NCBI RefSeq assembly: GCF_021869535.1
Contig: NW_026262712.1
Span: 10,106,001-10,170,000 of the forward strand
Direction of reading: 5' to 3'
Source: Mytilus californianus
Lineage: Eukaryota
DNA length: 64,000 nucleotides
Under the pieces are notes generated by a model. The model searched no databases, was not told the DNA's origin, and worked only from the letters and a program-made list of their open reading frames with translations. Shown piece after piece: positions 13,135 through 62,722 of this stretch. The position numbers and the translations under genes were made by a program. Within the stretch, counting starts at the first letter, position 1; the number at the start of each line of letters is the position of its first letter.

Positions 13135-13560
13135 ATATATGTATGTTGTCGGAAAATATAAAATTTATTTGTATGAGCTTTAGAAACAGGACGAAAAGCG
13201 AGGCTCCGCCGAGCTTTTCTCCTGTTTCAAAGCGAGTACAAATAAATTTTATATTTCCGACAATGTACATATATTGTGTTTATCCTGAAATTACTCCCAA
13301 CACTTGAAACTTCAGTTATTAAAATCTAAATCATTGTCTCTAATTTCTCAATGAAATCGACATGGTTGAAACGCGGACCGCGAAGAGAACCCCAAAATGA
13401 ACTGGTTCGGAAACAGAAATATTCATATTACCGCTTGCTCAACATGGAAGTGGGGTAACAGGAGGCTTTATTTGTACATGTACAAATAAAGCAAAAATTT
13501 ATTTGTATACCTGTTATTTGTATAATAGATGGCTAATTGCAGGATAAATACTGAATATCA
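13135..13560. mobile_element. Long-hairpin element (hairpin + short-IR module)
   Basis: About 130-bp palindrome centred near 13206, followed by a segment bounded by ttatcctgaaatta / taattgcaggataa. Confidence 0.6.
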
Positions 13561-14312
13561 TAAAAACATATTCCGCACTTCATTTATTCTTATATATGCT
13601 TGTACAGCACGGGAGAATAACTGACCAAAATATACGTATTACAGTCGGTGAATCCTCATATTCTATCCCATTGAAGGAAAACATAGACGTACTTAAACAC
13701 ATACATATATATCCAAATCAACATCTTTAATGATAATAATTGAAAAAAAGGATATAGCATATATTTTAACCAGCCACAGGCATTAAAAAACAACCATAAC
13801 ATTGAAAGTAAAGCAACTTTCTAGATATGAAACAAATTACAATCATTATTTCGTCATTGTATCAGCACTTCTTATATTGTAAATCTTATATAAAGTAAAA
13901 AATATAGTGGTATTGATTCATGATTCTTCTTTAACTGTCAGACATTGATGATCATTGAATACAAATTCATTGTTTCCTTGAACAGAAATATTATGTTATT
14001 GATGTGCATATTCTTTATCTGTTTCAGTTCTATTTATAGTCAAACATTAAAGGGTATATCTCCTTTTGCATTGCTCTGATTCTTTGTCCGGTTTTTGCTA
14101 TGCTTGTGCTTTTTTAGGGGGGGGGGTAATATTGTTTTTAACGTTTGTATTAGATTTTGGAATATCCAATGTGTTAGACTCTTAAATCGCCGAACAAATA
14201 ATAAGTGCAGAAGTTGACATCTGTTGCAGTGGAATTTGTACCGTTAATGATTTCTACGGTCTCTCCTTTTCAATATGACAAATACAACATTAGCAAATGA
14301 AGATTAAAAATC

Positions 14313-17300
14313 TTACACATTAACTTTGTCTAACAACATCCGCAAAACTGCTAAATGACAGTATTTGTCAGCCATCTTTATAGGCGTTTGTCCATACTTG
14401 TCACATATTCTATAATCTGCTTCTCTGTCCAACAACATTTTTACGAGTTCTGTTTTACCAGTTTTACAAGCCATCAGTATCGGTGTCTGCCCAAAATTGT
14501 CACATGCATTATAATCTGCTCCTTGGTCCAACAAGATTCTTACTACTTTTGTTTGGCCAGTTTTACAGGCCATTAGTATCGGCGTCTGCCCAAGATGGTC
14601 ACACATATTATAATCTGCTCCTTTGTCCAACAACATTTGCACTGTTTCTATTTGACGAGTTCTACTAGCCAACAATACAGGTGACTGGTTCCATTTGTCA
14701 TAATGATAATTATAATATGCGCCTCTGTCTATCAGCATCCTAACTATATCTGAATGACCTTGTCTACATGCTTTCATTAACGATGACTGGTAATTAGCAT
14801 CACATTTATCATGATCTGCTCCTTTGTCTAACAACATTCTTACTATATCTATATGACCATGTCTACACGCCTTCATTAAAGGTGACTGGCCGTCTGAGTC
14901 ACATTTATCATAATCTGCTCCTTCGTCTAAAAACGTTCTTACTACATCGCTATGACCACGTCCACACGCCTTCATTAAAGGTGACCGGCCTCTTGAGTCA
15001 CATTTTTCATGGTCTACTCCGTTGTAAAACAACATCCTCACTATTTCTGTCTGACCATATTTACAAGCCATATTTAAAGGTAACCAATCCCCTGTGCCAC
15101 CAATATAATAATATGCTCCTTTATCTAATAATCGTTTTGCTATTTCTGTATGACCATGCATACACGCCAACATTCCAAGTGACTGACCTCTTATGTCACA
15201 TTTATTATAATCTGCTCCGTTGTCTAACAACATCATTACTATTTCTGTGTGACCATGCATACAAGCCATCAATACTGGTGACTGTTCATCATTGTCACAT
15301 CTATTATAATCTACGTCTTTCTCAAATAACATTCTTACTATTTCTGTTTGACCCTGCATACAAGCTAGCATTAAAGATGACTCACCATTATTGTTACACG
15401 CATTATAATTTGCTCCATTGTCCAACAGCAACTATTTGTGTATGACCATGCATACAAGCAATCATTACCGGTGACATTCCATCGTTGTCACATTTTTTAT
15501 AATTTGCTCCAATGTCTAACAGCATTCTTACTATTTTTGTATGACCATGTTTACAAGCAATAAATAAAGGGAAATGACCAAGTATGTCACTTGTATTTTG
15601 ATTTGCTCCTTTGTCTAACAGCATTTTAACTATACTTGTATGGCCAAGTTTACATGCCATCATGACAAGTAAATCAGCAGTATTGTCACATTTGCTATCA
15701 TCTGCTTCTCTCTCCAACATCATCTTTAATATTTCTAAATGCCCATGTAAACATGTCATAATTACAGGCGACTGACCTCTCAAATCACATTTTTTATAAT
15801 CTGCTTCTCTGTTTATCAACATTTCAACTATGTCTGTATGATTATGTTTACATGCCATAAACAGCGGTGACTGTTCAAGATTGTCACATTTACTGTAATC
15901 TGCGCCGTTGTCTATTAACATCCTTACTATGGTTGTGTGACCATGTATACAAGCCATTAGTGTAGGCGACTGACCAATTTCGTCACATTTATTACAATCT
16001 GCTGCTTTGTTTAAAAACATTCTCACTATGTCAGTATGGCCATATCTACAAACAATCATCAGAGGCGACTGGCCACAAATTCCACTTTCGTTTACATCAA
16101 CACCATGACTGCAACACCACTGGATCATATTCATGTCTCCAATCGAACAACAATGTAGCATGACAGTGTCACATACAATATCCCTGTAGTATAACATTTC
16201 ACGTATACATCTTTTATAATCAGTATCACAGGCATGTACCAATTGCTTTTGGTAACCTACATCTAATGTATTCAAATAACACAGAAACCTTTGTCTGAAA
16301 TGACGCATTTTCATGTTTTTGTTATTAAATACATCTTGTAGTTTCCCTTTTGACCAGTCGTCAATCATTCTCTGCATGTATAGTTGGTGGTACTCAGAGG
16401 GCACACTCGTGATAGACTGATCTGTGGCGTCTATTCTTTCCAGTAAAAATATTTCCCGTATCAAGCAGCTGTCAGCATTCTTGATCAGACAGCCGATTAT
16501 TTTCTGTCCAAAGTATTTAGCTAGAAAGTGAAATATTTTATCATGAATAGTTGTGTAGAAGCTTTTAGTTTTTAATATAAGTTTGTTGTTTTCTGTTGTT
16601 GGATATAATTTGTCTTGTTTTTTTAATAATGTATTTAAAAGGGAATCCATTTCATCTTTCAAAAAAAGTCTTGATGTTCCTCTGTCCAGTTTACACGTTT
16701 CACACGTGTTCTCTATGATAGTTTTTGTTTCTTCATCAATCTCCTTCGTTAACATATCTTCGTTCAGTTTGTTATTGAACATGACACATAAAACCAAAGC
16801 ACAGTATTTACCAAAACATCTTCTCTTTTGTAGCTGGTCAACCTGTGCTTCATAAACTGAATAAGGATGCTGGAAAAAATGTTTTATGTCGTTGGTAGGA
16901 TTTTCATAATACAATTGACATAAAAGTGGAAAACAATCGTACAAATCATAATAATCTGAAATCTCAATAGCTTTTGTTTCGAGGTATACCTCAGCTATTG
17001 ATTGTTTCTCTTTTTTTGTCAAGCACATATCAACTGACAAAAAATTACACACAGATGAATTAAAAATTGATAATGTGTCAAAGTTGTTATCTTGGTACAC
17101 TTGCAATCTACATGCTACCATTATTTTTGTTTGTTTATCTTCAGTTATCTCTTTTATAGGACCACTGACGGATTCTCAAAGTTTGATATCATTCTGGCTC
17201 ACAGAAAAATTCCCAAATAAATCTTCTATAACAAACAATGTTTTCTGGTTTGGATTGTAATATTTGACAATGTCACCTGGATCTGTCACTAAAAGTATGT

Positions 17301-17486
17301 CGTACCCATGAGCATTCATTTGTAAAGCCACATGCTGGAGTGTTGCAGTCTTCCCTACACCAGAACTAGCTGTTATGGTAACGCAACTGTTGCCTTGTAA
17401 AAGTTGCAGTACGTATTTGGCAGCTCTTGTGCTTACAAACATCTTATCCTTATTTTTCCATTTTTCAAGATTTTTGTTGATTTGTG
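14313..17486 (-). pseudogene. Copy B terminal exon: STAND (nSTAND3-like) NTPase + about 19 ankyrin repeats, disrupted by one nonsense codon and one frameshift
   Basis: Acceptor ttgtag| at 17489-17487. Walker A ASSGVGKT, Walker B LFVIED. In-frame TGA at 17178-17176 (IKL*ESVSG) continues in the same frame into ORF 15403-17121. Near 15430, ATA GTT GCT GTT GGA lacks 5 nt relative to the previous repeat (ATA GTA AGA ATG CTG TTA GAC), shifting into ORF 14313-15431. ANK consensus GQSPLMMACxHGHTEIVRMLLDKGADYNKCD. Confidence 0.85.
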
Positions 17487-18479
17487 CTACAATGAAATTT
17501 AACACAAACTCTATCATTATTTATATAAATAAGAATTGAGTGGACTTATATAACCTATAAGAAATAAATAACTTCCGCCTTTTCTAAAATTACATCCAAA
17601 TGAATTATTCAAGCAACTCTGTGGATAATATACAAACATTTCACTAATGCTACCCTGGGAATTCTTTACACAATGATTTAATAGCATATACCCCTTCTAT
17701 GTGAGCAGTTCAACCTGACATAGAATTTTCTCCTCTTATATATAGAAATATATGAACAAAAATACCGTAATAATGTGAGTTGTCCGTCATTGTGTTATTG
17801 TGTTATTGTGTCATGGTAAATGTTTGTTTATATATCTGTTTGTTTTTATAGTGATTAAGATAATAACACAACGGTGACTGCTGTACCCCTATTTTTGACA
17901 TTTTTACCTATTATGTCTTTTTGTTTTGTTCACACATCGTTGTCAATATAATGGCATTTTATACGACTGTCATACAAGTGAGAGGTTTATCTAGCTTTAA
18001 AACCAGGTTCAATCCACCATTTTCTTCATAAGCAAATGCCTGTACCAAGTCAGGAATATAGCAGTTGTTGTCCATTCGTTTGGTGTGTTTGAGCATTTGA
18101 TTTTGCCATTTGATTAGGGACTTTTCGTTTTGAATTTTCCTCGGAGTTCAGTATTTTTGTGATTTTACTTTTTTTTGTCTCATTGGCACTCATACCACAT
18201 CTTCTTATATCTATATAAAGTCTATACAAACTGACAAAACCGACAGCTCGGCTTGACGTCCAACGGAACGTCTGGAAAAAAACTGTCATATTCCTGACAT
18301 GGGTCTTTTATAGCTGACTATGCGATATGGGCTTTGCACATTGTTGAAGGCCGAACAGTGAACTATAGCTGTTAGTTTCTGTGTCATTTGGTCTCTTGTG
18401 GAAAGTTGTCTCATTGGCAATCATACCACATTTTCGTTTTTTATACGGAATGGCGTTGTCAGTTTGTCTTATGAGTTTG

Positions 18480-18960
18480 TATCTTCCGCCTCTCTTAAGA
18501 AGTGTATGAAGGAGTTTTGCAAATTAAGAACAGGTCGACAAGGAGAGATAAACAGGCTGTTCCCATAGCAGTCTGACAACATGCTCGACAATTCTACCTC
18601 CAAATTCAGTAAATATGATGTCACTGAGAAACTCCAGCATACTGATCACTTGTTCTTCGATGTTGTTTGTTTTATACTCGGTACATTTTCAACAAAATAT
18701 TCCAAATTAATTTCAACAATAATAAATTTGAAGCGCATTGTACCCTTTTTATGTAGGAAGGCACTGAGGATTATTTTCTTAAACGGGTTTTCAATTTTTT
18801 CTGCGGTATGGCAGCGTAAAATGTAGAAAAATCGATGGTATTTGTAGAAATTATTTCAGAGAAGGAACGAGATTAGAAACTTTCTAGTAATGCGTTAGAG
18901 TGCTAATGAATCCGGATATGGCATCTACGCGAGTAACAGTTTCATTCTATTTCCAGCAGA
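18480..18960 (-). mobile_element. Decayed Penelope-like RT fragment in intron 3 of copy B
   Basis: DFSTFYAAIPQKKLKTRL, EEQVISMLEFLSDIIFTEFGGRI and MGTACLSLLVDLFL across frameshifts; homologous to 6400-6700. Confidence 0.65.
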
Positions 18961-19909
18961 CAAATTTTGTGTTGCTCAAACGGTCATTTCCTTGCTACAA
19001 CATGCATATGAACCTGTCAATGTCATTTGTTTGTACGGAATTTAGTGAGGTTAAGGTATCCAATAAAAAAGTACAATATACCATCATTTCTAATTATCTG
19101 TGGGCAGAAACAATAAATTGAATCTGATCTGTAAATATTTATTCAGTTGTAAAAATCAATGTTCAATGTTTACTAAACAATGGCATAAACATGAAAATGG
19201 GAGTTGTGTGTGCACGTTAAACTTGTTCCACCAATTTAGGCAATGATGACCATTTGTTATTTGTTGTTGTTTTCATGTACATGTTTTCTCTGGAGTGGGG
19301 AATTTGTGTTGGTGTTATGTGCATGTTATATTGTCCAATAGTTTTTGAATTACAGTAATCCTTTACATGCAATTTTACTTCAAAATAAGACTTAAACAAT
19401 CCAACTTCCACCTGACATTTCTAGCATGGTCTATCAGTATATATCTCTAGTGTTTCAATATACTTTACTACTCTTTCAGTTGGCGTCTTTGAAAATTTCA
19501 TTTGTATGTTTGTTTGAATATTTTAAGTTGTGTAGCATATCTTGTGTATGTTTAAATCACTTTGGATCATGGATCACAGTTTCGGTCACAATAACAAATT
19601 AAATCTGTTTGGGTTGCCAACACATTTTGTTCACCTAACAGAACTATAAACAGCTTGCATAAAAGTGGGAGGTATAGCTAGTAATAAAACTAGGTTTAAC
19701 CCACCATTCGGGAAATTCCGGTACCACGTCGAGAATATGACTGTTGTGTTTCAGTCGTTCCGTTGGTTGATAGAGTTGAGCGTTTAGATTGAGAGGATTT
19801 GTGAATTTCTCGCTTTTCGAATTTAACTTGCAGTTATATAAAGAGTTTAGTATGACCTTCCATTATTGGTTATTTTTCTAAGTTTACAACTTTAATTTCA
19901 AATGTTTAC

Positions 19910-20237
19910 CTCTTACATTCCATGGCACTGTATCCTGCTGAGAGTTTGCAAGTTTTTTTTGGAGCGATGCATAGGAATTCTTCATTTCTTCATAGTCTTC
20001 TTGAAGCAGTGAATAGCGTTTAGTTCCTTCTTCGTAATTTTCTTGCAGTAGTTCATGTGATTTCTTGATTTTTAAATGAGACGATTTCAATTCTTCCAAT
20101 GATCCTTTTATTTCTTTGATTTCATCCTTAGAATGTTTGATATCCATTATTATTTCTTGGTTGGTCTGATCTAAAAGTTTGGTTTTCAACTGATAACATT
20201 CCTGTTCCATTGTGCGTCCTCCTAGTCTAGCAATAGC
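19910..20237 (-). CDS. Copy B coding exon 3: HEPN C-terminal helix + coiled-coil linker
   Basis: Acceptor gttacag| at 20240-20238 and donor G|GTAAAC at 19909; 328 nt, phase 0 to 1. AIARLGG...EIKEIKGSLEELKSSHLKIKKSHELLQENYEE...VPWNVR with heptad pattern. Phases match the flanking exons. Confidence 0.8.
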
Positions 20238-20892
20238 CTGTAACATATATGATAGTACTCGAAAAAGCAGATGATACACAAATTGTATGATGTGTAGAAA
20301 TTCTAAAATATTATGGCAATAAGTTAAAGAGATTAGACAGTCGTCATGCATGAACGGGTAAACTACATATAGAAAAGAAGAAAGGAAAGGAAACACGTCT
20401 TCTGAAGAATAATTCTACATTATATCAAGTTATTGACCATCGGCCAGGGAAGCTATATGTGCTTACCGGAATTAGAGATGAATAGACGATGCAATGTAAT
20501 AATGAAATATACTTCCGATAAGGTTTGTCAAACAACTATATTTTAGTCACTAACATGACGCCTTATCATAAAATGCATGATCACATTAATCACCAGCTCG
20601 ATCAGATGGTACCGACATTGGCGTCAAGTAACGATGTACATAGTATTTAAGACTGTTGAAATACAAAGATAAACACTTATAAGTTTTTCAATACCCATAG
20701 TTTCTGATGAAAGCCTTAGCAATGTTTGATCGCTATTGGCCTAGTGGTAGGAGGGGATAAAGTTTCGAAAAAAAACCCACAACATATGAACAATAGGGAA
20801 CAAAGTGTTCACAAAAGGTCGTTGCGGCTTTCTTTTTTTTTAAATTAATAACGTAAATATAGATTTTCAGAAAACTGATTAGAATTACATAC

Positions 20893-21122
20893 ACCTGTTA
20901 TATCAGTCCAGGCAGTATTGAAGAATGTAGTGTCTATTTTCCCATCATCAAGATGAGCCAAGTAGTTCCTGTAATACTTTATTCTTGACAAATCAGCACC
21001 TTGTGTGACTTCAACTGTTGATGGTAAACAGTCATATCCACCAGCAGGAGGAATCATGGGAGTTAGATTTCTCAATAATGTTATCATCAACGTGACGTCA
21101 AACGTTTTTGAATCAGGAACAC
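20893..21122 (-). CDS. Copy B coding exon 2 (HEPN catalytic half)
   Basis: Acceptor tttccag| at 21125-21123 and donor |GTATGT at 20892; 230 nt; RNYLAH motif intact. Confidence 0.85.
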
Positions 21123-21944
21123 CTGGAAACATTAAAACATTAAAACATATGCAAGATAAACACTCATACTTAGTCATTCGGATTTGGTTTTGTCGAATGA
21201 AAAAAAGTAATAACAGTTAATATTCTTTGAAGACATCGATCAGATGTTTCCTCTGAAGCTAGATCAGATCTGTCTATCCATCAGGAACACATGAGATCAA
21301 CCCAGGTTTTTGCGAGGTTCATGCTGCTCAATCTTTAGTTTTCTATGTTGTGTTTTGTATACTGTAACTTGTATTTTAGTCGTTTTTCGTTTTTTCGAAT
21401 GGCATTGTCACATCGTTTTCGACCAAAAAGTTTTAGAAAAACTTCAAAAGCTTTCACTTCTCTTTTCCACACCATAGATAATATAACCCTAATCATTCAC
21501 TGTGATGTTACATCTCAACATCCATTTAAAAAAGATATATGTTGAAGCGTTTTTAAAGAACAAGATATTGTATTTTTTTCTATAGCAGACACTGATTGTA
21601 ACCTTCTATAATAGCAAAGTGCAGCTATATTAAGCTGATATTAGAGAAGAGGGTTAGACATTAAAGCAGGCAGTTAATCACTTTGAGCTTGCTTAAGTAA
21701 CTGTTAGCATTATTTCAAAAAAAGTAATTTGGTTTACAGGTTTATTTATACTTTTGTTTATGTCTCTCCTATTTAACAATCATAAAGATACACGTTTTTC
21801 CTTTATCATTTTTGTATGCTGTTTTCGGAAATCGACTGTTTCTAGAATAAACCAGGTATCTATAAACATACCAGCTTGCAATTGAGGACATCCAGTGAAA
21901 AAGAGATTGTTTTGGTAGAAATAAACATGAATCACTTAACTAAC

Positions 21945-22880
21945 AAGCCTGAGTGTATCTTAGGAACAGAAGATACCTCTGTGTCTAGAATAGAACATGC
22001 CTCTCTAGACGTACCAGCCTGAGGATATCTCGGGAAGAGAAGAGCCACTGTTTCTAGAATAGAACATGCCTCTCTAAACTAACCAGCCTGAGGATATCTC
22101 GGGAAGAGAAGAGCCACTGTTTTGAGAATACAACATGCCTCTCTAACCTTACCAGCCTGAGGATATCTCGGGAAGAGAAGAGCCACTGTTTCTAGAATAG
22201 AACATACCTCTCTAAACTTACCAGCCTGGGGATATCTCAGGAAGAAAAGAGACCACTTATTTCTGGAATAGAACATGCCTCTCTAGACGTACCAGCCTGA
22301 GGATATCTCGGGAAGAGAAGGGATCACTGTTTCTAGAATAGAACATGCCTCTCTAAACTTACCAGCCTGGGGATATCTCAGGAAGAAAAGAAACCACTTG
22401 TTTCTAGAATAGAACATGCCTCTATAGACGTACCAGCCTGAAGATATCTCGGGAAGACAAGGGATCACTGTTTCTAGAATAGAGCATGCCTCTCTAAACT
22501 TACCAGCATGGGGGTATCTCCGAGAGAGAAGATACCTCTGTTTCTAGAATAGAACATGTATCTCTTAACTTATTAATCTGATGGTATCTCGGGAAGAGAA
22601 GAGCCACTGTTTCTAAAAAAGAACATGCCTCTCTAAACTAACCAGCATGGGGTATCTCCGATAGAGAAGATATCTCAGTTTCTAGAATAGAACATGCATC
22701 TCTTAACTTATTAACCTGATGGTATCTCGGGAAGAGAAGAGCCACTGTTTTTAGAATAGAACATGCCTCTCTACCAGCCTGAGGATATCTCGGGAAGAGA
22801 CGAAACCACTGTTTCTAGAATAGAACATGCCTCTCTAAACTTACTAGCTGATCATATCTTGGAATTAGTAGATTCCAATG
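21945..22880 (-). repeat. About 69-bp minisatellite (about 13-14 units) derived from the exon1/intron1 junction of copy B
   Basis: Period of 69 seen at 21991/22060/22129; some units are 70-71 bp. Minus-strand unit reads ...CTTCTCTTCCCGAGATATCCTCAGGCTG|GTAAGT..., matching the exon end LLFPR..G|GTAAGT. Confidence 0.85.
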
Positions 22881-23354
22881 TTTCTATAATAAAACTGGGA
22901 TATCTGTACTTAAAATGATATACAGGAGAGTCTACTTTATTCAGAAAGCAACTAATCAACTATCCCAGGTTCTTAATTCTCTCCGTGCCAGAAGTCGCAT
23001 AAGGCCCTAGCTTTTCTATCTTTTGCCGCTGTTCTGGCCACGTTCCAACTATCCCAGGGGTTTCGTCTAAATACGTATCATTAGTAGCGCTCAACTCAAA
23101 ATAGTTTAAAGGTCAAATCAAATACAGCGTTGGAGAGCATTCAAACCAAGAAATACGAATGAGTAGTCATAAAAACATGTTTCTATTAATTTATAAGCTT
23201 CGAGATATCTTGCATAAAAGGGGTTCTGGTGTTTTGAGGAATGTCTTGAGAACAGGAGATTCCGCTGATACTGGACAAAACATTATATCTCTGTATGTAC
23301 CTATTAGGATATCTAGGTGACGGGAGAATCAACTAAGGCTTGAAAAAAACATAG

Positions 23355-23790
23355 ATAGATATAAGAAGATGTGGTATGAGTGCCAATGAAACACCTCTTC
23401 ATCCAAGTCACAATTTGTAAAAGTAAACCATTATAGGTTAAAGTGCGGTCTTCAACACGGAGCCTTGGCTCACACCGAACAGCAAGCTATAAAGGACCCC
23501 AACAAGTGAATAGTGTAAAACCATTCAAATGGGAAAAACAACGGTCTAATCTATATAAAAAACGAGAAACGAGAAACACTTATGAACCACATCAACAAAC
23601 GGCAACTACTGAACTTCAGGTTCCTGACTTAGGACAGGTGCAAACAAATGCAGCAGGTTTTAAACGTTTTAATAGGTACCAACCTTCACCCTTACCTGAA
23701 ACAATAGTGTAACATCACAACATAGACAGACACACTATAAAATATCAATTGAAATGGCTTAACTCAATCAAAAGACACATTAACACAAAA
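23355..23790 (+). repeat. Interspersed repeat family C, interrupting the junction-derived array
   Basis: ataagaagatgtggtatgagtgccaatga...gagccttggctcacaccgaacagcaagctataaagg; also at 35545-35797(-), 51855-52080 + 52895-53097(-), with fragments at 18175 and 32500. Confidence 0.85.
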
Positions 23791-23799
23791 TGTCTGGAC

Positions 23800-24760
23800 T
23801 TACCATGAAATCTTGAAATCATAAGATTCCACTTATAATAGAATACAACATGCATCTCTGTACATAAAGGTAATCTTCGGAAGAGGATAATCGGTTGTTA
23901 CTTAAATAAACCATGCATTGCTGTACTTCACAAGAGACCTTGGGAACAGGCGATTCTACTGTTACTAGGACCAGTATTATAAAACTTCGTTCTCTGTACA
24001 AAATTGCATATTTTGAGAAAGAGCATTCCCTGTCACTGATATAGAGTAATCATTCCTGTACGTAACTGACATTTAGCAATAAGTAGATTTAACTGTTCCC
24101 AAAATAAATCTTGAATATCTGTACTAGCCAGGTATATTGAGAGTAGGAGATTCAACTGAGATTGGATTAAAACGTATATCTCTGTACTTATTACCATGAT
24201 ATCTTGAAAACAGGAGATTCAGCTGAGACTGAAATAAAAGTTGTCCATGATATCATGGAAACAGGCGTTTTGGCTATATTAGAAAAAATGGATATTTATT
24301 ATCACTAGAATATTTTATAGACCGAATTGTCTGATGTTACTGGACTAAACATAAGATCTCTGCACTTATCAAGATATCTAGAGAACAGGAGATTTAATTT
24401 TTAACAGGAAAAAAATGCTCCTCCGTATTTACCTTGTTATGATGAGAACAAATGGTTCCATTGTTACTGGAGTTAAACTTGGATCTCTGAATTTACAAAG
24501 ACATCTTTAAAAGAACAGGCGATTGCACTTTTATGAGAATAAAACTTCGATCTCTTCATTTACCGGAACATCTTGGGAACAAAAGACTTTATGAGAATAA
24601 AACTTCGATCTCTTCACTTACCGGAACATCTTGGAAACAAAAGATTTTATGAGAATAAAACTTCGATCTCTTCACTTACCGGAACATCTTGGGAACAAAA
24701 GATTTTATGAGAATAAAACTTCGATCTCTTCACTTACCGGAACATCTTGGGAACAAAAGA
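23800..24760 (-). repeat. Degenerate about 60-bp and near-perfect 58-bp tandem copies of the same exon/donor junction
   Basis: Four 58-bp units at 24528-24760 (tttatgagaataaaacttcgatctcttcacttaccggaacatcttgggaacaaaaga), the last overlapping the real donor. Older copies at 23800-24520 and 23215-23340, e.g. tctgtacttattaccatgatatcttgaaaacaggagattcagctgagactg. Confidence 0.75.
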
Positions 24761-24960
24761 TTCCACTGACATTGATTTATTACGCGCTTCAATTTAAGGT
24801 AATTCAGTTTGTTATACTCTTTCTTGATTGTGGCATCCAGACATGATGGAGCAAATTCGCGATCAAACAAAGATCTCACTCCACGTGGAGAAATTCCAGT
24901 CAGCAACAAGCTCATCCTTACATAATTTTCTTCCTCTTGTGACAGAGAAGCAGCTGTCAT
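24738..24960 (-). CDS. HEPN-STAND-ANK gene copy B, coding exon 1
   Basis: ATG at 24960, MTAASLSQEEENYVRMSLLLTGISPRG...QWNLLFPRCS, donor G|GTAAGT at 24737; 223 nt. Upstream acceptor ttttcag| at 25180-25178. An in-frame upstream ATG at 25059 is also possible. Confidence 0.85.
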
Positions 24961-25424
24961 CGTGTTGATTTGTAAAATCAGAGTACTATTTTTGTATTTT
25001 GTGTAGAATTGCGCATTACTTGCGTTTATGCAAGGGATAGCTATGATGTGTTTATGCAAGAGGTAGCTAGGACTTTGGTAGATAGTTTGGTCTTAGATTG
25101 CCTTTTCCATCAAGTTTTCATTTCGGTTGAATGATTTTGCTCTTTAACATTCCTAATTCCCAGATTTTGTGCATTTCCTGAAAAAAAATTAAAAAAAGTA
25201 TATCAATATATGATAAAAATTTTCGAACAGCATATCAAAATTATTATTGAATAAGTATTACAGACTCCTGTGTGTCATTATGCCTCAAAGTTTTTCTTTG
25301 ATATAACAGAGCTTCCAGAATTTTTCCAGGGGTGTCACCAAAGCCAACTTTATACCAAGGTCATTAGGGAGTAATAAACAAATCGTAACACATGACTCTT
25401 CCTTCAATGTTTTGTAGCTGGCTG

Positions 25425-25850
25425 TTATTTATAGATTCTTACATTGATACCAGTGGATTATCGGATTTATCCAATCGAGATAGTTAAATTATCAATTTTA
25501 AAGTCCGAGCCTCGGCGAGGACTTTAAAATTTATTATTTAACTATCGAGATTGGATAAATCCGATAATCCACGAGTAACTATATATGTAAGAATCTGTTT
25601 CTCTAATGATTAAAAAATAAATTTTCCTTTTTTGCTAAACTAAAATCCCCTTCGAGTGCATTCCACTTTCCATAAAGTTGTCAATTTCATTAACACCTGT
25701 TAGCATATTTTGATGCATCCAGTGAGCTGAGAAAGGTTATGACCCTTAAACTCATCCAATCATCTTCTGAGATCACTGGCAACCACACGTTGATTAATTT
25801 TTTTTATACAATGGGTTCGGAATGGGATAAATTTCCATAGAATTAGAGAA
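25425..25850. mobile_element. Long-hairpin element (hairpin + short-IR module)
   Basis: About 170-bp palindrome centred near 25511, followed by a segment bounded by tttctctaat / attagagaaa. Confidence 0.6.
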
Positions 25851-60877: not shown

Positions 60878-62722
60878 CTATTTGTTTTTACAGCTTGAAA
60901 CAACAGAGGTTTTTACAACTGCTTCTAACAGACTATGAAATTTTTCGTCATAAAACTTCAATGAATTCAAAATATGTGGAGCACCTATGTTGACAATGGA
61001 AATGTTTTTAAAAATGTAATTCCCTGTAAGATTATATGTATCACTTTCTTTTGTCGCATTAATAACCACTACATGAAGCGTGACTTCATCTATGATGTCT
61101 TTAAAGACTGATAATGCTCTGCTCATTGTAATTCCAGTGTGCAAGGATCCTGTTGCAACCCGTACCAAAAATAGCATCCCTCTATTTTTAGATTTCTTTG
61201 ATGGTGGACTGCTACTTGATTCGTCACTACTACCAGAATCAAACAAAGTAGGCTGAGTGTATAGAAAATAATCAAAGCCCATGAAATTTGTAACATGAGG
61301 ATAAATAATGAATGACTGATCATTACACTTTTCTATTTCTCTTTTCACATAAACGGCAGCTTTGCACACATTTGCTAAATGACCTTTATATTTCTCCTGT
61401 ATTATTGCATCTTTTACAATTTCATTTTTTGGTCTTAAGCAATATAACTTTCTGGGCTTCATTACTCCGTCACATTGTATATACTCATTTGTATCGGATG
61501 CTTCTAGACTACAAGTATCAAAAAATTTATGTTTATCGGGGATAATAACACAATCGTTTTCCACTTGACAATTTACAAGACCATCCTTGAACATTTTCCG
61601 CAAACTACCATTTTGTAGACTAAAATCCAAAATTCTATTAGCATCTTCACAATTTAATACCTCTTCCAACTTCAAAGGCAGCTTTTCTATCCAATGTTGA
61701 CCAAGAAAGGGCACTAAATGGCTGATAGTTACATATCGATCCCCTTCTTCCAGCTCGAGCTCGTAAAATCTGCAATTATCCTCCAAATCCTGCCTGGTTA
61801 CTTCAAGAATTTTAATGTCAAATATATTAATAGCTACCTTAAAATTAGCAACCTGAGAAAGTGTACAAATTATGTTTTTACCCTGCCCAACTAGGCAGTC
61901 CAAAAGTAGTTTAGTATCAAGTAAAAATGTTTCACAATAACTGCTTTTCAATTCATCTTTAAACATTGCAATCTCTTCTCTTAATTTAATTTCAGCACAG
62001 TAAGAAATTTCGTTAATTTTTTTACCAAATATGAACATTTCATCGAATGCATCATGTAATAGTCTTGGTGTAACTATGAATTTATCCTTCAACTCATAAT
62101 ATACCTTATCACCTAATTTGAGTAAAGAACTAACTAATTCATGTCGCCCTGGGAAATCTGTACTTTTTACTGACAACATTCCGTTCCAAATCCTTTCAAA
62201 GTCATTTAGATCTAGTTGAAAGTCCTTGTTGAAGTCAAGGTTAGTTGTATAAACACATGCAGTGAATCTAGATTCTATTAAAACTATTTTTGCAAAAGAT
62301 GTGAGTTCTTCAATTTTTTCGACTAACTTCCCGTTAAATAAAGTCACATGATCAATGACCAAACAATCGTTATTTTTTACACTGGCAATGTATTGAGAGA
62401 ACTTTTCTAAATTCTTATCCTTCTTTTCAATTATACTCAAGTCAACATAATGAATTCCTCCATCTCCATTTTTTCTACAACTAAGAACATGATACATCAC
62501 AGATGAAGATTTGCCGATACCTTGAATCCCTACAATTCTTTCTTTTTGAAGAGCACCTTTTCTGACTGCTTTAATAACTTCCAAAAAATGGTTATGGAAT
62601 TTGGTTTTGATAAAACATTTATCTTTAAAATTCCTTGCAAATGTTTTATATGTCAGAAAATGTTCATCTGTCTCTGCAACTTTCAGAATCTCTTCCTCAA
62701 ATCTATTCTTTATGTCTGGGTC
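60878..62722 (-). CDS. Terminal exon (614 aa) encoding a P-loop NTPase + putative REase-fold domain, Crinkler/RHS-like
   Basis: The listed ORF starts at a TTG. The frame stays open 46 codons further (DPDIKNRFEEE...) up to acceptor ctgtttttag| at 62725-62723. Walker A GIQGIGKS, Walker B CLVIDH, IVTPRLL, C-terminal YPHVTNFMGFDYF...LFLVRVATGSLH. No stops in 1845 nt. Upstream exon not identified. Confidence 0.75.
   Translation of the reverse strand, partial: DPDIKNRFEEEILKVAETDEHFLTYKTFARNFKDKCFIKTKFHNHFLEVIKAVRKGALQKERIVGIQGIGKSSSVMYHVLSCRKNGDGGIHYVDLSIIEKKDKNLEKFSQYIASVKNNDCLVIDHVTLFNGKLVEKIEELTSFAKIVLIESRFTACVYTTNLDFNKDFQLDLNDFERIWNGMLSVKSTDFPGRHELVSSLLKLGDKVYYELKDKFIVTPRLLHDAFDEMFIFGKKINEISYCAEIKLREEIAMFKDELKSSYCETFLLDTKLLLDCLVGQGKNIICTLSQVANFKVAINIFDIKILEVTRQDLEDNCRFYELELEEGDRYVTISHLVPFLGQHWIEKLPLKLEEVLNCEDANRILDFSLQNGSLRKMFKDGLVNCQVENDCVIIPDKHKFFDTCSLEASDTNEYIQCDGVMKPRKLYCLRPKNEIVKDAIIQEKYKGHLANVCKAAVYVKREIEKCNDQSFIIYPHVTNFMGFDYFLYTQPTLFDSGSSDESSSSPPSKKSKNRGMLFLVRVATGSLHTGITMSRALSVFKDIIDEVTLHVVVINATKESDTYNLTGNYIFKNISIVNIGAPHILNSLKFYDEKFHSLLEAVVKTSVVSSCKNK

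Follow-up and report, generated by a model that had tools for sequence, protein, structure and literature searches.

HEPN domains of the DZIP3/hRUL138 family are found fused to ankyrin, NACHT, CARD, Death and LRR modules (Anantharaman 2013, PMC3710099, Table 1), and lineage-specific expansions of DZIP3-type HEPN proteins have been described in oyster and Nematostella (Anantharaman 2013, PMC3710099). In the pearl oyster (Pinctada fucata), more than 50 NACHT proteins with an N-terminal DZIP3-HEPN have been called NLR-like, the R-x4-6-H motif is present in 194 of 202 proteins with RNA degradation as the proposed activity, and copy numbers differ between haplotypes (Takeuchi 2022, PMC9646362). The nSTAND clades of NTPases were introduced by Kaur 2021 (PMC8195603), and the papers on bacterial Avs5 (including PMC11897194) place its nucleotide-binding oligomerization domain (NOD) in nSTAND3. 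Here, we describe a gene that joins these elements in the mussel Mytilus californianus (genome 1.65 Gb). It lies on the minus strand at 14313-24960 of the window, the 64,000-nucleotide stretch of DNA that was analysed as a whole (contig C132, 10,106,001-10,170,000), and positions below refer to that window. The locus, at ~10.12 Mb of the contig, is very probably one tandem member of a lineage-specific Mytilus family with the order HEPN_DZIP3, coiled coil, nSTAND3 NTPase and ankyrin array, and this is the best explanation of the evidence as a whole. The assembled allele is a null: codon 364 is an in-frame TGA, the ankyrin array has lost 5 nt, and a Glu stands in place of an otherwise invariant Walker B Asp.

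Comparison with known systems

The locus resembles the pearl oyster proteins and the DZIP3 HEPN family in its order of domains (a DZIP3-type HEPN with R-x4-H at the N-terminus, a STAND NTPase in the middle and repeats at the C-terminus), in large tandem bivalve expansions, in differences between haplotypes and in a proposed role in RNA degradation and immunity. The pearl oyster proteins combine NACHT with LRR, TPR or WD40, whereas in the locus nSTAND3 is preceded by a coiled-coil linker and followed by ankyrin repeats. Bacterial Avs5 (AVAST type 5; EfAvs5, PDB 9JAP) likewise has an effector, a NOD in nSTAND3 and a repeat sensor, and its effector is activated by assembly. It differs in that the effector is a SIR2 NADase rather than HEPN, the sensor is made of TPR, Sel1 or PPR units rather than ankyrin repeats, and the gene is a prokaryotic single-exon one. 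The layout of effector, STAND module and repeat sensor that the preliminary description had likened to NLR and Avs proteins holds, and the likeness to Avs goes beyond analogy, the NTPase being a member of Pfam nSTAND3, in which the NOD of Avs5 is also placed. The locus is nevertheless not a member of the bacterial Avs systems, being a spliced animal gene in which PADLOC found no Avs model and no HEPN match (the only candidate system was PDC-S73, 1e-11); as far as membership goes, nSTAND3 is all that is held in common with Avs5. Nor is it a NACHT-LRR protein, as no NACHT or LRR match was returned by Pfam in the gene, its NTPase being nSTAND3 and its repeats ankyrin, so that among animal NLRs it is NLR-like by layout. 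RNase L is an animal antiviral protein in which an ankyrin sensor is coupled to a HEPN-superfamily RNase that is activated by dimerisation; its domain order (ankyrin, pseudokinase, KEN) is reversed relative to that of the locus, and it has no STAND NTPase. The likeness to RNase L is one of mode of action and not of membership, its HEPN being of the KEN family and that of the locus of the DZIP3 type (PMC3710099, Table 1).

The same architecture is already found in annotated Mytilus proteins. Dozens of them have the same Pfam architecture, and those compared here, P0005 (M. californianus LOC127704365, on the same contig at 9.83 Mb) and P0039 of M. edulis, have the same four-exon layout and domain order as the locus. 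The locus differs from them by the stop at codon 364, the 5-nt deletion and the Walker B Glu; the frame of P0005 is open and that of the M. edulis copy is +1 frameshifted. The best 120 database proteins all come from five Mytilus species, most of them with PF18738, PF20720 and Ank. In the genome, at least 119 STAND modules were scored among 496 candidates, several with internal stops, and at least 150 HEPN_DZIP3 exons above the Pfam cut-off were counted among 637 candidates. The nearest paralogs (67-71% identity) lie within the same 0.4-Mb stretch of C132. Neither is the gene an unusual find nor its interpretation a new idea: it is one of hundreds of genome copies, and an NLR-like reading with a HEPN RNase effector was already in print (PMC3710099, PMC9646362), of which the reading of this gene is a sound restatement. 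What the literature on Mytilus plus HEPN yielded was nothing specific to the HEPN_DZIP3-nSTAND3-ankyrin family, and the variant with nSTAND3, ankyrin repeats and a coiled coil is present in database annotation and not singled out in the HEPN, NLR and Avs literature found. The locus itself thus matters little, as one disabled copy among hundreds whose architecture is already covered by Pfam/UniProt annotation and comparative-genomics papers. The family is worth an experiment, with a NOD family in common with Avs5 and hundreds of mussel copies with an invariant R-N-x3-H; no biochemistry of a DZIP3-type HEPN fused to a STAND NTPase was found in the HEPN, NLR and Avs literature.

Gene model and conserved domains

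Four exons with canonical GT/AG boundaries and compatible phases were recognized by inspection of the minus strand, and their lengths (223+230+328+3174 = 3955 nt) and splice sites agree with those first proposed. Exon 1 (24738-24960, 223 nt) starts with the ATG at 24960, ends before a GT donor at 24737 and encodes the first part of HEPN_DZIP3. Exon 2 (20893-21122, 230 nt), flanked by an AG acceptor and a GTATGT donor, encodes the HEPN_DZIP3 core, and exon 3 (19910-20237, 328 nt) encodes the coiled-coil linker and ends in the conserved QQDTVPWNVR. Exon 4 (14313-17486, 3174 nt) holds the nSTAND3 NTPase, the helical/winged-helix region and the ankyrin array, and is broken by the stop and the frameshift. 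The first 363 residues of the spliced product align to P0005 with 75% identity and without gaps, and because this match spans all three junctions, the gene model is sound by homology.

Membership of the HEPN superfamily (DZIP3/hRUL138-like) is supported by exon 2 alone, which passes the Pfam gathering score of PF18738 with 73 bits against a cut-off of 27 (profile positions 39-113); exon 1 adds 19.4 bits over profile positions 2-34. The R-x4-H motif RNYLAH, with the putative catalytic residues, lies at 20953-20970 (minus strand), as had been noted from the sequence, and its R, N and H (R-N-x3-H) are invariant in 34 diverged Mytilus family proteins (alignment A2). A structural model of the HEPN domain, built on paralog P0005 (residues 1-160), reached a pLDDT of 91.8. 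The coiled coil that had been placed between HEPN and NTPase is upheld as a domain call: exon 3 returns weak matches, all of the coiled-coil type, in Pfam, and the corresponding part of P0005 was modelled as a coiled-coil dimer. Two copies of P0005 (residues 1-262) gave a dimer score of 0.64 against 0.00 for the best control. Of proteins solved as one-chain pairs, 21 of 30 attain this score, and of those solved as single chains 0 of 23; for eukaryotic proteins the figure is 17 of 29, with just 1 among the 7 that lack an older solved relative. The runs share at least 90% of contacts, the partner pLDDT is 88, and the interface consists of a parallel in-register coiled coil (residues 175-251) with additional HEPN-HEPN contacts. 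The two-copy model supports, short of proof, a pairing of the HEPN domains via the coiled coil. The dimer modelling proposed earlier thus succeeded in that the pair passed the complex test, with the qualification that it was made on the HEPN and coiled coil of a paralog.

The P-loop STAND NTPase is likewise borne out. The first 102 residues of exon 4 match nSTAND3 (PF20720) with 65.9 bits against a Pfam cut-off of 27.2, and the Walker A P-loop GVGKT is encoded at 17347-17361 (minus strand), with G, G and K invariant in alignment A3. The match spans profile positions 1-83 of 155 only because the domain is cut by the in-frame stop; the piece of exon 4 after the stop, searched alone, gave no nSTAND3 match, and the intact neighbour gene matches positions 1-137 with 79.8 bits. 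For the NTPase, a model was made of P0039, the nearest intact relative (residues 190-614; pLDDT 85.5). Foldseek matches of this model include NLRP, Apaf-1/Dark, NLRP3, NLRC4, NOD2, plant resistosome NLRs, Avs5 and Avs4 (E 3e-7 to 2e-5; EfAvs5 9jap_A, E 6.8e-6), with ORC/Cdc6 AAA+ proteins in the same E range. On the P0039 model, the fold is the succession of nucleotide-binding, helical and winged-helix domains of NLR, Apaf-1 and Avs proteins. Sequence searches of the Protein Data Bank (PDB) with the neighbour's NTPase and with a profile of 31 family sequences returned nothing significant. Downstream, an array of about 19 ankyrin repeats, the presumed sensor, occupies 14316-16170 (minus strand) with a periodicity of 33 residues, with Pfam matches to Ank_2, Ank_4 and Ank (E from 1e-41 to 1e-81); the repeat count agrees with that given in the preliminary description.

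Frame breaks and alleles

The gene had been described as 1320 clean codons once a '5-nt gap' was restored. Codon 364, which that description passed over, is an in-frame TGA (17176-17178, minus strand) inside the NTPase domain, between Walker B and the remainder of the domain. Twelve paralog loci were fetched, one of which (L005) stops short of the site; the 11 that span it all encode Trp there (motif DIKxWEP), and so does P0005. The supposed gap is a real deletion of 5 nt between 15431 and 15430 (minus strand), given that the whole window is without any N; it shifts the frame within the ankyrin array, where the reading changes between the open reading frames (ORFs) at 15403-17121 and 14313-15431. 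A third change affects Walker B (LFVIED, 17221-17238, minus strand), whose Glu codon GAA at 17226-17224 stands where 31 of 31 family members have Asp, and this is the sole broken column among 48 invariant NTPase columns. An uninterrupted coding sequence, as expected of a working STAND member, is thus absent here (the TGA and the 5-nt deletion are also present in the contigs of run X1, introduced below). With a stop at codon 364, a frameshift of 5 nt and Glu in Walker B, the assembled copy cannot give rise to the proposed 1319-residue protein, and the working sensor-effector first claimed for this locus is not what the assembly holds. If translated at all, the assembled allele would give 363 residues, a stub of HEPN, coiled coil and P-loop. 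Decoding of the TGA as selenocysteine or by readthrough was considered and rejected, as the paralogs have Trp, other alleles have TGG and a frameshift follows downstream.

Four sequencing runs were aligned to 15300-21250. X1 consists of DNA contigs at depth 44-50 and may be the assembled sample, and so is possibly not independent; X3 is DNA from a different individual and study; X10, probably RNA, comprises a small set of contigs; and X21 provided raw RNA reads, the RNA nature of all RNA-labelled runs being a guess. X1 matches the window at 17176, 17224 and 15430 with no alternative letters, and because of this agreement the lesions do not look like assembly errors, with the reservation that X1 is possibly the same sample. 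X3 and X10 both have C at 17176 (plus strand), which gives TGG (Trp), A at 17224 (plus strand), which gives GAT (Asp) in Walker B, and five extra letters behind 15430 that keep the ankyrin frame. Other individuals therefore carry alleles without the stop, the 5-nt deletion and the Walker B Glu, and the assembled haplotype, with its three derived changes, represents a true null allele, recently disabled, at a polymorphic locus. Contigs of X10 fall on parts of exons 3 and 4 (depth 2-4) and on none of the unique intron sequence, and 18-24% of exon 4 words are present in three further runs of that study, also probably RNA; weak transcription in some individuals is likely. Runs X9 and X11, labelled organism B, hold 52% and 26% of exon 4 words and imply a near-identical sequence in a second labelled species; a close relative, a hybrid or a mislabelled sample would each account for this.

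The damage appears young. Of the invariant columns, 1 of 48 in the NTPase and 1 of 25 in the HEPN domain are broken, a level also seen among working members of the family. The closest copy in M. edulis, P0039 (locus L015), is 84.5% identical in nucleotides over exon 4 and 83-89% identical per exon. Relative to it, the ratio of nonsynonymous to synonymous substitution rates (dN/dS) is 0.28 in the NTPase and helical region and 0.30 in the first ankyrins, with dS ~0.25, and climbs to 0.60 further into the ankyrin array. Because there is little damage at conserved positions and dN/dS is ~0.3, the lineage appears to have been mostly under purifying selection and the loss to be recent. This pattern indicates a gene that probably worked until recently and is now being lost, as expected for a birth-and-death immune family. 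The M. edulis copy has Trp at codon 364 and the five letters, and carries its own +1 frameshift in the ankyrin array, an extra nucleotide at ~position 1688 of exon 4. It is located at 80.96-80.99 Mb of M. edulis OY782962.1, with the exon 4 region at 11290-14475 of L015, is annotated as two genes (755 and 481 residues) and represents a further frame-broken member in a reference assembly.

Proposed mode of action and rival readings

The tripartite layout of a putative RNase, a STAND NTPase and a repeat array, with an invariant R-N-x3-H, is present in the gene. On this basis, we infer RNase activity and ligand-triggered oligomerisation for the family. Intact members are probably cytosolic NLR-like sensors, in which a ligand from a pathogen or a danger signal would dock on the ankyrin array, while nucleotide exchange and oligomerisation would fall to the STAND module. 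The HEPN domains at the N-terminus, which the parallel coiled coil probably pairs beforehand, would be brought into an active arrangement, and the activated HEPN pair would cut viral or host RNA.

Several observations weigh against this account of the family and of the locus. The literature found on HEPN and bivalve NLR-like proteins contains no demonstration of RNA cutting by a HEPN_DZIP3 domain. A Foldseek search of the P0005 HEPN model against PDB gave nothing at E <= 0.001. The top rows of a wide VIA-align search with the same model (Z 6-7) are HEPN-rich, with a Cas13-type nuclease, Csm6, sacsin HEPN, Roquin, LsoA, RnlA and HepS among them, yet they fall below the tool's noise bar for helical bundles. 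The dimer model was built on a paralog, and coiled coils are readily modelled as dimers. The raw RNA reads of X21 cover the exons at a depth of 0.2 or less. The preliminary description had looked to a spliced transcript joining the exons; in the runs aligned, none of the three introns at the locus is crossed by a read or contig, and splicing is supported by homology to annotated paralogs. Finally, the alleles that escape the three changes have breaks of their own: 2 nt are missing at 19964, near the end of exon 3, in X3, and 1 nt is missing at 15534 in X10. These private frameshifts come from one low-depth contig each (depth 3.5-7.4) and are suggestive only.

The modest structural likeness to HEPN nucleases (Z 6-7) and the lack of any RNase activity of DZIP3-type HEPN in the HEPN and NLR literature could be accommodated if the family HEPN is not a nuclease but an RNA-binding or protein-interaction adaptor, which would signal like the Death-domain or CARD-bearing NLRs; some HEPN families are indeed inactive (PMC3710099). 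However, all 34 diverged paralogs compared keep R, N and H without exception, which is the pattern expected of a catalytic site, and the pearl oyster proteins keep the motif in 194 of 202 cases (Takeuchi 2022, PMC9646362). We consider an adaptor role possible but doubtful, and favour the nuclease.

An intact gene of 1320 codons that encodes a working sensor-triggered RNase at the locus is improbable. All domains and motifs are present, other individuals' alleles have Trp 364, the five letters and the Walker B Asp, dN/dS is ~0.3, and the probable RNA of X10 falls on exons 3 and 4 and not on unique intron sequence, with 18-24% of exon 4 words in the three further runs. Against this stand the stop and frameshift of the assembled allele, with which X1 (possibly the assembled sample) agrees, the losses of 2 nt in exon 3 of X3 and of 1 nt at 15534 in X10, and the +1 frameshift of the nearest M. 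edulis copy, annotated as two genes. No allele seen, whether of the reference, X3 or X10, is free of a frame break. A disabled copy at a polymorphic locus remains the better reading. That the lesions differ from one individual to another is in line with the haplotype diversity of immune gene clusters in bivalves, which is known to be high.

A further-reaching proposition, to which we give little credence, is that a functional/null polymorphism of an NLR-like RNase sensor is maintained here and that the family is an animal branch of Avs5-type (nSTAND3) immune NTPases, with HEPN replacing SIR2. If true, functional and disabled haplotypes would persist side by side in the population, much as with plant R genes, an active protein being costly without its pathogen. 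It is very unlikely that the individual has an intact gene into which assembly or polishing introduced the stop and the frameshift: long-read data are prone to frameshifts in repeat arrays and near homopolymers, but no homopolymer is present at either site, X1 (possibly the assembled sample) agrees at 17176 and 15430 at depth 44-50 with no alternative letters, and the same haplotype has the third derived change from Asp to Glu in Walker B.

Neighbouring genes and repeats

Upstream, the neighbouring gene is a tandem paralog on the minus strand that looks intact, with exon 1 at 2780-2565 and exon 2 at 581-354. Its exon 3 (L013 8513-9094) and an open exon 4 of 953 residues (L013 3887-6748) lie just upstream of the window, and beyond it a retroelement-like ORF pair is found at L013 781-2398. 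At the other end of the window, an ORF of 568 residues on the minus strand (60878-62584) has a P-loop-like GIQGIGKSS near its start; its best Pfam match, Cas_Csa4 (E 0.05), is not significant.

The start of intron 1 is occupied by a tandem array of 58 nt x 4 (24529-24762; TRF, 97% matches), which repeats the end of exon 1 including its GT donor. Each extra copy of the donor would add 58 nt and shift the frame. An alternative donor in these copies was considered as the main form and rejected, since the first donor gives the gap-free match to P0005. Further into intron 1, there is an array of 69 nt x 14 (21920-22895). An Rfam scan of 13500-25500, which includes intron 3, gave no matches. Intron 3 contains a very abundant interspersed repeat (17688-18682), with a summed contig depth of 1e5-3e6 in DNA runs against ~50 in the flanks, and RNA reads also accumulate on it. 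Short inverted repeats at 18045-18080 and 18267-18302 give this element the look of a miniature inverted-repeat transposable element (MITE).

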